Source: Hyaloraphidium curvatum SAG 235-1
Lineage: Eukaryota; Fungi; Monoblepharomycota
Reading direction: 5' to 3'
NCBI GenBank assembly: GCA_025558095.1
Contig: JAIVFI010000022.1
Span: forward strand, 496,001 to 560,000
DNA length: 64,000 nt
The notes below the pieces were generated by a model. It searched no databases and was not told the DNA's origin. It saw nothing but the letters and a program-made list of their open reading frames with translations. The position numbers were made by a program, and so were the translations under genes. Below, piece by piece: positions 21,781 to 28,734 of this stretch (its first letter is position 1; every line of letters starts with the position of its first letter).

Positions 21781-22164
21781 ACCTCGTTGCGGCACGCCCC
21801 CGGCCTGCGTTGCCCGACAGGGCCGGCCGACGAAGAGGGGGCTAACGTCCGGTTGTTCTTACCACCTAGTTGACTCTGTCGGGTGAATTTCCGGCATCAG
21901 TCATCGAGGAGGGACTTGACGGAGAAGGTGGTGCACAACTGAGTGCAGCGAAAAACGCACTCCCATGCAGAAGCCCACCTCGGCGTGAACAGACCTCCTC
22001 CCGTCGACTACAGAGCCTCAGGATGTTGCGAGCGTACGCTCGCGGCGGGGTTTCCGCGCCTTGCCCCCACACTGCGAAATACTCGCATCGTGCGGCCAAA
22101 ACAGGGCGCTGACGAAATGGCTCCTGACTCCTCACGAACCCCCACATCAGATTGTACCAAAGCC

Positions 22165-22880
22165 ATGGGTCGCCACGCCGGGCTCATCGCTCTGCTCCTT
22201 GTTCTGTCGCTCTCTGCGCTGGCCGACGCAAGGTGGGCCTTCGGGTGCCGGGGTCCTTCCGAGAGAGACGGGCCACCGACCCTCCGACAGCCCCTTTGCG
22301 AACCAGGTCCTGTTCGCCCGCAGCTGCGGGGACTGCGCTGCGGAATCGTACTGGTGGGCCCGCTGCGCACGTCCGCCACGCCCCCGCGTGCCTGACACGG
22401 CCCGCGCCCAGCGAGTTTTCCCACCCCGGGGCTCCGGAAGGCCACGTCGCCTGCGTCGCATACTTCCACGGCGCCCGCTCGCTCTACCGCCGCTACGACG
22501 ACACGGTATGCACCGGCCAGGACGTTGCCGGCTTCAAGAAGTGCCCCGACGGCGCCGTGCCGGGCACCGCATGCGACACCGGGACGGGGAACTTCCTCCC
22601 GGCGGGCGCGACCGAGTCGGGCGGTGCCTGCACGTATGCCCCGGCCAGCGGCGAGCGCTGCTGCGTCGACTTCACTTTCATGTCCACCAAGTTTGGCTGC
22701 AACACGGTGTGCCGCCCCGCCGCAGGCGTCGACGAGGTGCCGGTGTGGACCGCCAGCGGCCAGACCATCTACTGCGACAACGGTGGACTGGTCACGCAGA
22801 CGCCGGGAACAACTATGTGCACCACTGGCAACTATTCCCCGGTCCCCGGGATAGTTGCCTTGTGCTGCACAGGACAGTAG
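22165..22880 (+). CDS. Small secreted cysteine-rich protein A (signal peptide, Cys pro-domain, LYRR Kex2 site, Cys-rich mature domain)
   Basis: Introns 22233-22290 and 22354-22411 give MGRHAGLIALLLVLSLSALADASPFANQVLFARSCGDCAAESYCEFSHPGAPEGHVACVAYFHGARSLYRRYDDTVCTGQ...LCCTGQ*. Confidence 0.85.
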
Positions 22881-23411
22881 TGTTGAACACGCGCGACGAT
22901 GGTGGTGGCGGCTCCGCCGGCCGGGACGGAGCTGGTGACGAAGAAAGTCATCAATGAACCACCGCACGTGTTAACATAACAGCACGAGAGGTTGGGAGCT
23001 GTTGGGATCATTCATAGCAGGTGGGCCGCACAACTCCGCTTCAACATCAAGATTGCATCGTGGTTTGTCCTCCCATTGTACAAACATCAATCTCCTTTAC
23101 ACTTACGGCGCGTTCTGCCCCTGCCCTTATGCCCCGGTCGAGATGATGTGCGCCAGTGATGCCTGATCAGCGTCCAGCCAACGCGGCATGTCATGCCCTG
23201 CTCGCATGCGGGATGAAGCTCGTGAAAAACGGGGAAGAACGGAGGAGCAGCTGCTCGGAGGGGGCATCGTCGCCGTTGCGGAAGCGGGCAGAGAGTCGAA
23301 CGTTCACCTCCTAGGATCCCGCCCCTGCTTGGACGGCGGTCGGGGAGATGGAGAGACGCAATCGGTCGTATTAGTAAGGCGACTGCCTGCTTTCCGTCCC
23401 ACAACCGGCCC

Positions 23412-24041
23412 TCAGAGGTCCATCAGGTCGCCCGAACCCCCAAAGTCCTTGGGGAAATCCTTGAACTTGGGCAGCCCGTCCCCCTTGAACGTCCCCTCGG
23501 GCATCACCGTCTCCTGGTAGTGCACGTGCATCCCGGCCTTGAACTCCAGGGAGGGTATGGTCGAGGCAAACACGTCGACGACGGCGCCGTGGTCGTTGTA
23601 GAGGTGGCCACCGCACTTTGTGCAGAACTTGCGGGCCGAGAAGGAGTCGGGGTTGCTCCTGAAGGTGCCAATGAGGTCGGCGCCGGCGGTGATTTCGAGG
23701 CCGGTCGCCGGCCTTGGGATGCGGTGCGGCGTCGTTTCGCGGGCCGGCACCGGGATTTTGATGGTTGGTGCCGCGCAGCGGATTTCCGGACGAGGGTGGG
23801 TCAGCCTGGCACGGCCCGCGGCAAGCGCACGAATACAAAGCACGCACCAGATCGTGAACATGTTGAGCGGCCCTCCCGCCCAGTGGCGGCACGACCTGCA
23901 ATGGCCTGTGTCGTTGTCCCGAGTGAGCCCGGCCCCGGCCGATCACGCGGGGGCGAACGCACAGAATCCCATGGCGGACGGCTCCCCTGTGACGCGCAGC
24001 TTTACAGAGCCGCAGAAGCAGTCGCCTTGGTGCTGGGCCAT
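23412..24041 (-). CDS. GFA / Mss4-like (CENP-V) zinc-binding protein
   Basis: QGDCFCGSVKL, spliced CHCRSCR, RKFCTKCGGHL, MHVHY, DGLPKFKDFP. Two introns. Confidence 0.9.
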
Positions 24042-24393
24042 GTCTCGCCCGTGCCTGGCGTCCGCGGCGTTGCGTTGGGGACGCGAGCGGGTCGCGCGCG
24101 GTTGCCTCCCACACACCCCTGCGGAGTGGCTGCGGCGCCCGATGCTCGTCCGCAAGGCACAAAGCGATGGGCCAACAGGGCTATCACTGCCGGGTGCGCA
24201 GGATGCAGTCGGGGGGACAGGCCGAACGGGAGTGTGTGGTGGCTGTGCAGCTGCCGTGTGGCTCCGTGGGTGGCTCCTCGCTCTTCTATGGTTCCGGGAG
24301 TTGGGGTTGGGACCCAAGCCGAAACCGCTCTGAGACCCGCAGCGACCGATGTCAAGGCGCATCGCTGGCCCGATCGGGGTGCCGATTAATTGA

Positions 24394-25588
24394 TTGGATA
24401 ATCAGTACAAGTACGTTCCTGCCTTGACCGAACTGCCGCGGGGACTGCTCACGATCTACGGACAGCCATTGAAGAGGCAACCGGACTTTTCCACCACGGC
24501 CTCGGCGAGCGCAGCGCGGTGGCCAAAGCTCGCTTCTGGAGGAAAGACAGAGGACGGATGCCCGGAATCGCCGCTCCTGCGGCACGTAGCAGTCGACGGA
24601 TTGTGCCCTTGCCCGTCCCCAACGTGCGCAGGCGACCTGCCGCGGCGCGGCGGCTTGACTCGTCTGGTGTTGCTCGTTGCCGGCCCGCCGCTGTGGCAGC
24701 TTGTTATCTACGACATCCTCGTGCCTTGGACCTTCATAATCAGTTTCGGGAGCTACACGTGGTCCTAGCCGGGGCTCGCGGTTGTCTTTTCGCTCTCGCT
24801 TTTCTTCGGCGTGCTCTTCAATTACGTTGTCGCGTGGGGAAGCCTTGCCGGAGGGGCCGGCCAGTTTGTTTTGCAGCCATACCTGCGGCGCCTGCGAAGG
24901 CGGGCCATGAAGGACGCCCTCGACGCGATGCTGGATCGTCATTCGCGGGTAATGGAGGACGATCGTGCCGGCACTCCGAGCTCGCCGGCAGACTTTGCCG
25001 TCGCGCAATCCTACGAGGTCCTTCACTCCCACCTTGCACCGCTGTGGGAAGCCTCGGCCAGCAACCGCAACTTCACCCCGTTGGTCTTTGTCCACACAGT
25101 CTGGTGCATCATCTTCGGGCTGCTCTACCTCGTGGGTATTGGAAATGCCGCGCAGAGCCAACACTGACGATGTTTCCCTCCCACAGGCAACGGGTCGCTG
25201 CATTCCCGGCTTTGTCGTCGGCATACTGCTGTATCAGCTTTCAACCTTCGTGTTCGCCGTTGGCTCGGCCTCCGGCGCCAACGCCTCGATCAGTGACGCC
25301 CGGCACCTCTACCTCGCAGCGCAGTACCGCCTCCGGACCTTCCTCGCGCGACACGGCCCCTTCCCATCTGCCGCCGCGGACTCGCTCCGCGCGCACGACG
25401 CGCTGCTCGCCGCCTGCATCGCGCAGGCGGATGCGTCGGGGATGAAGCTCTTTGGCGCGACGGTCGGGCCGTCGGCCGTGCGGGTGACGGTCGTGACTCT
25501 GTTCACGATCCTGCTGGGCCTGTGGACCATCATCAGGGGCCTCGGAGGCACGCTGACGCTCGAGAGCATGTGTCCTATCGTTGCGTGA
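24394..25588 (+). pseudogene. 5'-truncated member of the 7-TM LTLESxCP membrane family, in-frame TAG at 24766-24768
   Basis: LLRH...LCPCPSPTCAGDL, LHSHLAPLW, CIPGF, LRAHDALL and LWTIIRGLGGTLTLESMCP align with 36798-38333. TM1-2 are missing. One intron at ~25132-25186. Confidence 0.75.
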
Positions 25589-25772
25589 CCTTATGTACTC
25601 GGCCTCGATTTCGAAAGTGCTCTTGAAAACGGCACTCCCGCCGAGTCACGTCATGTCGAGTCACAAAGCGCAGGGACGCACCCAATAGGGAAATGATCCC
25701 TCATTCACTCATTCACTCCCTATTCCTCACTCACCAAACACTGCATATCGTCCGCTCATCTATCTGGCCTAC

Positions 25773-26442
25773 ATGAGAGCCGCCCTTGCCGCCCTCACAC
25801 CCTTCTTCGCCCTGCTCGCTGTCGCCGCGTGGGTGCCACGGCGCCGCCCCCACCGCCCGCCGCCGCTGTGCTGACTGCACTTCCCGACACAGACCGGCTC
25901 TCGGGGCCCCCGCCGCCTCCTCCCCGGCCATCTTCGTGCGCTCTTGTGACGAGTGCGACACGAACCAATATTGGTCAGCGAGGATTTCCGTCCCCAAACG
26001 CGCCGGCCGCGCTGACGGATGACTCCGCTTCAGCGAATTTTCGCACCCCGGCGCGTCCTCCGAAGCACCGCTCGCCTGCGTCTCGTACACGGACGGCCAC
26101 TCGCTATACCGCCGCTACGATTACACCGGCAACTGCCTCGACCGGCCGGGACTGGACGCCAAGTTCTACTACGAGTCAGCGTCGGGCAGCTACTGCTGGT
26201 GGTTTTCCGAGCAGGGCGGCGCGTGGAAGCTCAACATCGCCGAGGGGACATGCCCGCAGTCGACTCCGCTCGTCGCCTTCGACGTCGTGGCGGCCTCGGG
26301 GAGCGCCCCGGGGACGTGCTGGACCGCCAGCCCCAACGGCGTCCAGTTCGGGCCCGGCTGCAACTCGTTCGTCATGCACGGGGGTTCGGAATCGTGCGGC
26401 GGGGCTACGGGCACCATTCCCATCACGGTTCCGTTTGCCTAG
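25773..26442 (+). CDS. Small secreted cysteine-rich protein B (same pro-domain as 22165-22880, unrelated mature domain); not in ORF track
   Basis: Introns 25829-25892 and 25974-26033 give MRAALAALTPFFALLAVAAPALGAPAASSPAIFVRSCDECDTNQYCEFSHPGASSEAPLACVSYTDGHSLYRRYDYTGNCLDRPG...PITVPFA*. Confidence 0.85.
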
Positions 26443-26899: not shown

Positions 26900-28734
26900 T
26901 TATTCCACAGCGAACCAAAGTCCCCCAGGGTAGACCGCCCCGTCATTCCCGCACGAGAACTTCATGTCCCCCGGCTGCGTCCTCATGAAGCACGTGGCCG
27001 GCCCCCGCCCGAACTCGATGAAGAACTGCAGGCACGGGAGCGCGTCGCACAGGCCCCGGCACCACAGCGTCATGGCCACCGCGGAGTTGTCGAAGTTCGC
27101 GGCGTCGTCCACCTGGGAGGCGTCGTAGTCGGGCGTGGTGCAGCCGGGGGAGAAGTTGCCCCTGCGGACGTAGGCGCGGGTCGCGGTGCGCGTCTGCGTC
27201 CGCGTCGGGGTGAGCGACGGCGTCTCGCTCGCGGTGGAGGACGTCAGACTCTCCGACGTTGTCGAGCTCGCGAGGGTCTCGGAAGTGCTTGAGCTCGTGA
27301 GGCTTTGGGAGGTGGTTGAGCTCGTGAGGCTCTCCGAAGTGATCGAGCTGGTCTGCGACAGGCTCGTCGTTGTCCGGGTCTGGCTGGTCGTCGCGCTTGC
27401 GGATGTTGTTGAGCTCGTGAGGCTCTCCGAAGTGGTCAAGCTGGTGATGGTCTCCGACGTAGTCGAGCTCGTAAGGCTCTCGCTGGTAGTCGAGGAGGTC
27501 CGGGTCTCGCTTGTCGTCGAGCTGGTGGCGCTCTGGCTGGTTGTGCTGCTGGTCGCGCTGATGGTCGAAGTCGCTGGCGTGAAGGACGTGCTGCTGAGGG
27601 TCGAGCTCGGTAGAGTTTCGGTGCTGCTGGTCTGCGCTTCGGACGTCGTAGCCGAAAGCGAGCTTGTACTCGCTGTCCCGGAGGTGGTGGCCGTCAAAGA
27701 AGAGCTCGCAGTGGCGCTGGATGTCCACGGCAGCGTGGTGATTGCCGCACCCGTGACCGACGTCGTCTGGAAGGGACGCAGTATCAGCCTGGTTGTTCGC
27801 CGGAGACACGACGAGCGACCGACCCCCTGGATGAACGTCCCGCCATCGACGCTCGTCGCCCCCGCCGGCCACGCGATCCGGCCCACCTCGATGCACCCGT
27901 CCAGCACGGCCAGAAGCAGCTCCGGCGGGGGCGGGGTGGTGGTATTGCCCGCCGCGGAGCCGTCCGTGCCCGTGCGCATGGCGAACAGGGGGTTCGGGGG
28001 GCAGTCGCGCGCGGCGAGGCGTCGGGCCGGCGGGGCGCCGGCGACGAGATCCACGCCCGGCCACGGGATTCCGGAGGGGTCGACGAGCCGCACGGACAGG
28101 GTGAAGCGGAGGGGGATCCTGGCGGTGGCGGTGCGGCGCGGGGTCGTCCTCCTTTTCGGTGTGCTCGCGCGGCGGGTCCGCGTGATCGTCCGCGTCAGGG
28201 TGCGGCGGGGGGGGCAGCACCACCGCGAGCCGGATGGCGTGTCCGAGGTGCGGAGGATGGCGACCCCGCGCGGGCAGGCGGGGCAGAGGTGCCGGGGGGC
28301 GAGCGCGTGGCCGACCTGCGGGGCGGCGTCGTCGGGCTCGCGCGGGGTGAAACCCCGGCCCGCGATCGCGGCCGCGGCTAGCGGACGGGCAAACCGAATT
28401 GCCGTCACGGTTTTTGTGACCGTTGCTGGGGCCAGGCGCGGGCAGCTGCGGGGCGATCAGGCTTCCGCGTGGGTGCGGTACGGCGGGACACGCACCAGCA
28501 GCCGTCCGCGGTCGGGTACGTGCAGCCCCGGCAGCTGAGACGGAGACGGGTTAGCTGCGGCCGATTCGGGGCGGCGGAGGCGCACCAAACAGGGGCCGCG
28601 CGCCAGGGCATCGACGCGGCCGCAGCGGGGCCGGTGGTGCGGAGCACCGCGAGGAGCAGCGCGGCCGCGAGGAGCGCCGCCTGTCGCGGGTGGAAGCGCG
28701 CCGACGCGGCACCGTGGAGGCGGAGGTGTGCCAT
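26900..28734 (-). CDS. Secreted mucin-like Ser/Thr-rich protein with Cys motifs and C-terminal PAN/apple-like Cys domain
   Basis: Hydrophobic N-terminus (AALLAAALLLAVL), short Cys exons, LAPRHLCPACP..CCPPR motif, long S/T stalk, terminal WCRGLCDALPCLQF...TCFMR. 5' exon structure is approximate. Confidence 0.7.
27235..27570 (-). repeat. 30-nt coding tandem repeat (TSESLTSSTT-like, ~10 degenerate copies)
   Basis: Plus strand shows recurring gagctcgtgaggctctccgaagt units at 30-nt periodicity. Confidence 0.85.

Follow-up and report, generated by a model that had tools for sequence, protein, structure and literature searches.

In the conotoxin superfamilies and in the cathelicidins, a constant N-terminal region is followed by a basic processing site and by mature domains that are hypervariable or unrelated, and the cathelin domain of the cathelicidins is a folded pro-domain with four cysteines. 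The pro-region of yeast alpha-factor has Leu-x-Lys/Arg-Arg at its end, where Kex2 cuts it, and is able to carry unrelated cargo through the secretory pathway; it is glycosylated and has no cysteines, and it naturally belongs to one gene family, many cargos having been placed behind it only by engineering. Here we describe a family of predicted secreted proteins of the fungus Hyaloraphidium curvatum, a free-living saprobe and a wall-bound, non-flagellate relative of the chytrids, in which one four-cysteine leader stands in front of many different C-terminal domains, which we call payloads. The family came to notice through two genes, gene 1 (22165-22880) and gene 2 (25773-26442), in a 64,000-nt stretch of strain SAG 235-1 (contig JAIVFI010000022.1, positions 496,001 to 560,000), referred to below as the window, and coordinates are positions in this window unless another contig is named. 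The leader is present in at least 150 genomic copies, and we think it most likely that it is removable.

The initial annotation of the window had likened these proteins to conotoxin precursors. The constant pro-region and the variable mature part of that comparison stand, but it fails on one point because the H. curvatum signal peptides are not conserved, whereas conotoxin precursors have a conserved signal and pro-region ahead of a hypervariable toxin. The payloads also differ from the variants of one scaffold seen in conotoxin-type precursors, as they are unrelated domains that include large non-peptide ones (a propeller and a metalloprotease). The likeness to cathelicidins extends to a four-cysteine domain that is predicted to be folded, with no homology between them. 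There is likewise no sequence similarity to the alpha-factor leader, and the H. curvatum leader is found naturally on many cargos.

Among the oomycetes, Crinkler (CRN) and RXLR proteins are encoded by hundreds of genes that share an N-terminal motif and a conserved junction, have diverse C-termini, and often lie in dynamic genome regions. None of the motifs LxLFLAK, HVLVxxP and RxLR-dEER is present in the leader consensus, and CRN and RXLR proteins are host-translocated effectors of pathogens, whereas H. curvatum is a saprobe that is not known to have a host. Polymorphic toxin systems carry toxin domains such as nucleases, deaminases or pore-formers at their C-termini, usually beside immunity genes; in contrast, Pfam searches with the 82 H. 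curvatum family members find binding-type domains and one Peptidase_M8, the sole toxin family being one weak match. Immunity-like partner genes were not seen, though no search was aimed at them.

The alpha-factor leader, the conotoxins and the cathelicidins are general analogues. By the same kind of comparison, the nearest fungal concept in function is that of the Kex2-processed pro-domain (K2PP) effectors, for example SnTox3, ToxA and SIX1/4/6 (Outram et al., PMC8528282). K2PP effectors and the leader family alike have a signal peptide, an N-terminal pro-region that ends in LxxR, KR or RR, and then a mature domain, which is cysteine-rich in K2PP effectors; the family has KR/RR or LxxR in the N-terminal half, and the genome encodes kexin-type convertases. 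K2PP effectors are nonetheless defined by Kex2 cleavage, whereas the cut in the leader family is predicted from sequence. The K2PP search looks for a disordered pro-domain (PMC8528282), and the leader is instead predicted to be folded, with a predicted local distance difference test (pLDDT) score of 90-96. K2PP pro-domains are short, usually disordered, and unconserved between effectors; in H. curvatum a single domain, four-cysteine and predicted to be folded, is found in at least 150 genes of a non-pathogen. Kex2-processed repeat proteins (KEPs) are outlined as secreted precursors with dibasic sites and tandem short-peptide repeats (PMC6339444, PMC7329392). Set against that outline the H. curvatum family differs, with one leader and one junction per protein and no repeats, and a further [KR]R is found in only 15 of 74 payloads.

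A four-cysteine leader family in H. curvatum

The initial annotation had read from the two genes a common module, a phase-2 intron within the same cysteine codon, and a similarity that ends at RRYD, and all three are borne out. Both proteins contain the stretch (L/I)F(A/V)RSCxxCxxxxYCEFSHPGA...ACV...SLYRRYD, and the BLASTP alignment is confined to residues 26-75 of gene 1 and 28-77 of gene 2, a module of about 50 residues in which 28/51 positions are identical (E 4e-14). The alignment ends at RRYD-T, two residues past RRY. Intron 2 of each gene is in phase 2 and splits the codon of the third cysteine between TG and C. A common signal peptide had also been proposed, and this is right insofar as both proteins start with one, but the two sequences are unalike and the alignment begins downstream of both. 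By inspection, each signal peptide has a short charged n-region, a core of 12-15 residues rich in Ala and Leu, and a c-region of small residues, a pattern likewise seen in nearly all of the 82 annotated family proteins.

The leader consensus spans about 45 residues and reads [VLI]-F-x-R-S-C-x-[ED]-C-x4-6-[FY]-C-E-[FY]-x-[YHF]-P-G-[AT]-P-x3-V-A-C-V-x6-13-L-Y-[RK]-R-Y. Across 67 aligned leaders, there is no variation in the four cysteines or, within L-Y-[R/K]-R-Y, in the first Leu and the last Tyr; the Phe before Cys1, the Glu after Cys3, two prolines and Ala-Cys-Val are nearly invariant. At the five junction positions in these 67 sequences, Leu is present in 67, Tyr in 60, Arg in 59 or Lys in 8, Arg in 65, and Tyr in 67. 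The dibasic pair in the 82 proteins is RR in 69 cases and KR in 10, and is never RK or KK. The leader is always single, lies directly after the signal peptide, and is separated from the payload by 1-10 variable residues.

We modelled annotated proteins, minus their signal peptides, with AlphaFold2 (AF2), using alignments made of same-class paralogues and leader-only pieces of other members. The leader is compact in the models of both genes, with three short strands and a short helix and pLDDT of 90-96. Structural comparison with VIA-align places it closest to helianthamide (Z 3.5, 35 residues aligned, root mean square deviation [rmsd] 1.8), with cryptdin-4, beta-defensin 6, crotamine and big defensin at Z 2.1-2.6. 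These Z scores, from 2.1 to 3.5, are too weak to claim a shared defensin-like fold, and defensin-like peptides have six cysteines whereas the leader has four.

Further copies with differing payloads, which the initial annotation had anticipated, are abundant. A six-frame search of the 31.9-Mb H. curvatum assembly matched the last exon of gene 1 in 106 places and that of gene 2 in 27, and most of these matches span just the first 30 or so residues, which correspond to the leader. With a profile that covers 37 positions of the part of the leader encoded by exon 3, we obtained 150 scored matches from 187 candidates, all with E <= 1.2e-6, which puts the shared leader well outside chance resemblance; the figure of 150 is a lower bound. 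Searching 1.84 billion representative proteins with the same profile (HMMER) gave 85 matches, of which 82 are real and 3 are unrelated repeat proteins. Ten of the 82 were sampled, and all ten are H. curvatum hypothetical proteins; with that sampling, no leader was found outside H. curvatum among the 1.84 billion representatives. In a word-filtered search, profiles of the gene 1 and gene 2 payload classes likewise recovered H. curvatum proteins alone. A search with the last exon of gene 1 under such a word filter recovered just the protein of gene 1, an effect of the filter and no sign that relatives are missing. The leader has no match in Pfam, among PDB sequences or in the ESM Atlas, a PDB profile search gave chance-level hits only (E > 1), and no description of the family turned up in the literature searched. 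By its sequence profile, the leader is a new domain family, restricted to H. curvatum as far as the 1.84 billion representatives show.

The gene layout is also shared. DNA-level statistics refer to 54 distinct copies, and the remaining statistics to annotated proteins. At the DNA level, an acceptor AG followed by C stands immediately before the Glu codon that follows Cys3 in 49/54 copies, and 43/54 have an upstream exon that ends with C-x-x-C-x3-9 and then TG, followed by the donor GT. The introns that split the leader are 44-172 nt long, mostly 55-70 nt. Of 26 annotated genes that were mapped, 21 have intron 1 where the signal peptide ends, and four have no intron 1. The usual arrangement is thus an exon 1 that encodes the signal peptide, an exon 2 with a spacer and the first half of the leader, and an exon 3 with the second half and the payload. 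As the junction between leader and payload lies within exon 3, simple exon shuffling at that point is not how payloads were swapped. We note one copy, L010 (G000:C9:103487-106915, minus strand; P0038), in which the phase-2 intron has been lost and the Cys3 codon is an uninterrupted TGC.

The copies are divergent. Over a 20-codon core in 45 copies, the proportion of synonymous differences (pS) is 0.46 and that of nonsynonymous differences (pN) is 0.18, despite a G+C content of 89% at third codon positions, and pS is below 0.1 in just 3 of 990 copy pairs. The pS and pN values and the rarity of low-pS pairs indicate that the copies are old and under purifying selection, and these divergences argue that they have not been recently spread or homogenised. 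Leader identity averages 54.5% within payload classes and 51.5% between them, and the nearest neighbour belongs to the same class in 14 of 49 cases; no clear history of either shuffling or co-divergence is readable from these identities.

Copies of the leader are concentrated towards the ends of contigs and often form small arrays; the first part of C28, for instance, has six in 16 kb. Examples of clusters are at G000:C28:1645-17298, C3:9616-17350, C16:8981-32616 and C2:1289010-1296538. By hand count, 26 of the 150 copies are located within 35 kb of a contig start, compared with about 9 expected, and on contigs C1-C5, for which lengths are known, 12 of 28 are within 35 kb of either end, compared with about 1.6 expected.

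Payloads beyond the junction

Cut after the dibasic pair and grouped by BLASTP at E < 1e-3, 80 payloads from the 82 proteins form at least 32 components, in agreement with the earlier proposal of one conserved leader with swappable payloads. The largest class is PAN/apple-like with 18 members, and the classes of gene 1 and gene 2 have 12 and 7 members respectively. Pfam searches with the 82 members identify PAN, EGF, Stig1, NHL, leishmanolysin (Peptidase_M8) and CBM_4_9 domains, together with an ALK/LTK glycine-rich domain (ALK_LTK_GRD) and a HYDIN-type Ig domain. A knottin-like domain, Toxin_23, is matched in one member only, and weakly (E 0.0046). Several payloads have no cysteine at all. 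Pfam matched no family with the last exons of genes 1 and 2, and gave nothing significant with extra payloads of other classes.

The payloads of genes 1 and 2 are unrelated to one another and differ in predicted fold, as the initial annotation had supposed of the two mature domains. BLASTP between them gives E 0.37, and profiles of the two classes aligned with hhalign give a probability of 0.1%. The gene 1 payload contains two copies of a C-D-x-x-T-G...G-x-C motif, and its AF2 model is of moderate confidence; no solved chain scores above Z 2.0, and a shape search of the ESM Atlas gives TM <= 0.33. The gene 2 payload is predicted with pLDDT of 84-94 to be an eight-stranded up-and-down beta-barrel. 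Its best VIA-align match is the C-terminal barrel of 1ei5_A (Z 8.5, rmsd 3.2, 86 residues aligned), followed at Z 5-6.4 by lipocalins, avidins, potempin E, PliC and designed barrels. The modelled likeness to calycin or lipocalin-like barrels is at the level of fold only, with no sequence family. Foldseek found no match in the PDB at E <= 0.001 for the model of either gene.

As a whole, the payloads of the 82 proteins are very low in Lys (1.9%) and Arg (2.4%) and rich in Cys (5.8%). One locus, L014 (G000:C10:134202-137534, minus strand), has a payload domain of the gene 1 class at the C-terminus of a Thr-rich mucin-like protein with no leader, and so payload domains also occur outside the leader context. 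L014 also carries mini-modules of the 'RHLCPACP' type, as does a mucin-like gene beside gene 2 (26900-28408, minus strand).

Several of the NCBI models for family members look wrong (P0003, P0013, P0037, P0058, P0060, P0071 and others). Some are fused to neighbouring genes (VIT1, thioredoxin, short-chain dehydrogenase and a 1318-aa chimera), and others omit the exon that encodes CxxC, which in the case of P0003 is present in the DNA (L018, with a 47-nt intron). The Pfam hits to VIT1, thioredoxin and short-chain dehydrogenase trace to such models, in which adjacent genes have probably been merged.

Removal or retention of the leader

Kexins prefer Leu at P4, Lys or Arg at P2, and Arg at P1 (PMC8528282), and the LYRRY junction conforms to these rules, with Leu at P4, Arg or less often Lys at P2, and Arg, never Lys, at P1. 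A single Kex2 homologue is present in numerous fungal species (PMC8528282), whereas H. curvatum has three kexin-type loci, at G000:C21:105681-107026 (plus strand), C17:595286-596761 (plus strand) and C33:286159-287678 (minus strand), each with a Peptidase_S8 domain followed directly, on one strand, by a P_proprotein domain. Several weaker P-domain matches are present besides these three kexin/furin-type loci. The domain architecture, the size of the family, its restriction to one species, the purifying selection on the leader, its predicted fold and the presence of kexins are established; from these we infer both a cleavage and a role for the leader beforehand, and on balance we think it somewhat probable that the leader is a structured pro-domain removed by a kexin. 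Early in the secretory pathway the folded leader would travel with its cargo and give all cargos one handle for folding, export or sorting; late in the pathway, one of the three kexin-type convertases would cut after L-Y-R-R and so free payloads with Tyr as their first residue. The payload freed from the gene 1 protein would be a 12-cysteine domain with no fold match, and that from the gene 2 protein a small eight-stranded beta-barrel.

A number of observations weigh against this interpretation. Disorder and poor conservation are usual among the fungal Kex2 pro-domains known so far (PMC8528282), and both the modelled folding and the strong conservation of the leader exceed the needs of a mere spacer. 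The LYRRY motif may be structural or a binding motif, because the invariant Tyr at P1' and the aromatic residue at P3 go beyond what a kexin requires. A few members have no dibasic pair at the junction, with RS, RD or SR instead. In the AF2 model of gene 2 the leader is at pLDDT 90-96 and the junction block dips only to 74. Lastly, dibasic sites within payloads number 20, compared with 11.4 expected; as the depletion expected of proteins that pass a kexin is absent, we do not use dibasic counts as support.

A serious but less probable rival reading of the same observations is that the leader is retained as an N-terminal module that gives varied secreted domains one common property, for instance the ability to anchor to the cell wall or matrix or to dock to a shared partner, in the manner of carbohydrate-binding or dockerin-type modules, with LYRRY forming part of the fold or of a binding face. 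The confident AF2 prediction of a compact domain of disulfide type, with many conserved aromatic residues, would suit such a module, as would conservation far above the needs of a cleavage site, P3 and P1' included, the many payloads of adhesion or binding type (PAN, EGF, NHL, CBM_4_9, Ig-like), and the lack of avoidance of dibasic sites in payloads. However, wall-binding, anchoring and docking modules usually differ from protein to protein in where they lie and how often they occur, and anchoring modules as a rule sit on long Ser/Thr/Pro linkers, whereas the leader is single, adjacent to the signal peptide and abuts the payload; for this reason it fits a prepro leader better. The most conserved motif is moreover located at the domain boundary and follows kexin subsite rules (Lys at P2 in 10/82, at P1 never), and model confidence in gene 1 drops exactly at the junction, from pLDDT 92-95 in the leader to below 50 in the three residues after RR (residues 50-52). 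We regard as rather doubtful, though not much more so than retention, a proposal that goes further than a cleaved pro-domain, in which the leader would be a universal cargo tag of a new kind, a folded domain with two disulfides, with a dedicated receptor and convertase routing more than 150 proteins to one destination, either a specialised secretory compartment or the cell wall, and clipping them between LYRR and Y. Such a tag would do in nature, across a whole genome, what engineered secretion leaders do, and would have arisen in one early-diverging fungal lineage.

Two further explanations are in our view only minor possibilities. The initial annotation had classed the genes as a fungal polymorphic toxin/effector family. 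In such a system the leader or LYRRY would target payloads to other organisms, as RXLR and Crinkler proteins are targeted, and the payloads would act as toxins or effectors. A constant N-terminus with a variable C-terminus is typical of such systems, the clustering of leader copies near contig ends is in keeping with them, and the family includes one knottin-like payload (the weak Toxin_23 match) and one leishmanolysin-type protease. The payloads lend the label no support, as most are of binding or adhesion type, several have no cysteine, and Pfam searches of the 82 members find no recognised toxin domain common to them and no toxin domain at all save the weak knottin hit; H. curvatum is also a free-living organism, and no host for it is reported in the literature searched. 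Marginally less likely still is that the leader is itself a product, a defensin-like peptide of about 40 residues with two disulfides, released beside the payload by cuts at [VLI]-F-x-R before Ser-Cys and at L-Y-R-R. Both flanks do fit an extended LxxR pattern (PMC8528282), and structural comparison puts nothing but small defensin-like peptides near the leader, but their Z scores are too low to establish a common fold. The [VLI]-F-x-R segment is a poor protease site because it forms a beta-strand in the confident part of both models, and it is hard to see why 150 genes with different tails should all make one peptide.

If the leader is a cleaved pro-domain, the family would be, in the literature searched, the largest set of fungal proteins with one conserved folded pro-domain, in which a single leader serves cargos that range from beta-barrels, PAN and EGF domains and knottin-like peptides to a propeller and a metalloprotease. 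The role of a pro-domain before cleavage (in folding, exit from the endoplasmic reticulum or sorting), the specificity of kexins in an early-diverging fungus, and the spread of a 5' gene cassette onto unrelated genes would each become directly testable. If it is instead retained, the leader would be a new extracellular domain family, whose ligand would be worth finding. In biotechnology the leader is a candidate for use as a natural secretion tag, and it cleanly marks a large share of the H. curvatum secretome.

Gene structures and transcripts in the window

The window has a G+C content of 66%, and its introns are short and bounded by GT..AG. Both genes are on the plus strand. Exon 1 of gene 1 (22165..22232) contains the start codon and the signal peptide MGRHAGLIALLLVLSLSALADA and ends in phase 2; intron 1 (22233..22290) is 58 nt long. 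Exon 2 (22291..22353) encodes a spacer and the first half of the leader (VLFARSCGDCAAESY, 22307-22351) and ends with the TG of the Cys3 codon, within which intron 2 (22354..22411; 58 nt, GT..AG, phase 2) is located. Exon 3 (22412-22880) carries the second half of the leader and the payload. The leader half (22412..22496) consists of the last base of the Cys3 codon and then EFSHPGAPEGHVACVAYFHGARSLYRRY, with the Arg-Arg codons at 22488-22493 and the predicted cut after them, between 22493 and 22494. The payload (22494..22880) is 128 aa long with 12 cysteines and its stop codon is at 22878-22880. When spliced, gene 1 is an open frame of 199 aa.

Gene 2 has the same layout. Exon 1 (25773..25828) encodes the start codon and signal peptide and ends in phase 2, and intron 1 (25829..25892) is 64 nt long with GT..AG ends. 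Exon 2 (25893..25973) encodes a spacer and the first half of the leader (AIFVRSCDECDTNQY, 25927-25971), ending with the TG of Cys3, and is followed by intron 2 (25974..26033; 60 nt, GT..AG, phase 2 in the Cys3 codon). Exon 3 (26034-26442) begins with the second half of the leader (26034..26118, EFSHPGASSEAPLACVSYTDGHSLYRRY), in which the Arg-Arg codons are at 26110-26115 and the predicted cut lies between 26115 and 26116. The payload (26116..26442) has 108 aa and six cysteines, with the stop codon at 26440-26442, and the spliced gene is a 181-aa open frame.

Transcript data come from one public run, available as contigs and labelled as RNA on a guess, which shows spliced joints but gives no levels and does not rule out isoforms. 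A single 971-nt contig (depth 73.7) covers gene 1 (22000-23041) and has joints that match both introns exactly, including that from 22232 to 22291. The splicing originally proposed for gene 1 is in this way confirmed, with an open frame that agrees with NCBI model P0001 and is identical to it from P0001 residue 28 on. P0001 has 27 additional N-terminal residues, supplied through an extra intron upstream of 22165 (22024-22164). The RNA contig is contiguous over 22000-22230 and has no joint for that intron, and translation of gene 1 is therefore likelier to begin at the Met at 22165.

Gene 2 is weakly represented in these contigs (depth about 3-3.7). The intron 1 joint, from 25828 to 25893, is confirmed, and the proposed gene is identical to NCBI model P0018 (KAI9016839.1); both genes are in NCBI as H. 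curvatum hypothetical proteins, and gene 2, which the initial annotation found invisible among the open reading frames, was already recorded. The same low-depth contig, the only one there, reads about 29 nt beyond the predicted donor (25973/25974) into intron 2, and the last exon has no RNA contig coverage in the single run. With no RNA joint across it, this intron rests on the P0018 annotation and on the family-wide splice position, and the splicing proposed for gene 2 is thus upheld by RNA in its first half and by annotation in its second.

Two more RNA contigs share just 33 nt with gene 1, at 22306-22338, which encodes LFARSCGDC, and differ from it beyond that stretch; other members of the family are their probable source. 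Between genes 1 and 2, a spliced gene on the minus strand (23399-24236) is covered by contigs at a depth of about 150. Its introns, CT..AC as read on the plus strand and GT..AG on the minus strand, are at approximately 23712-23846, 23905-23961 and 24054-24115, and its last exon gives only a weak match to a GFA domain (E 0.015) that falls short of the cut-off. A second spliced transcript runs from 24306 to 25355 on the plus strand, with introns at 24411-24465 and 25132-25186 and a depth of about 13.

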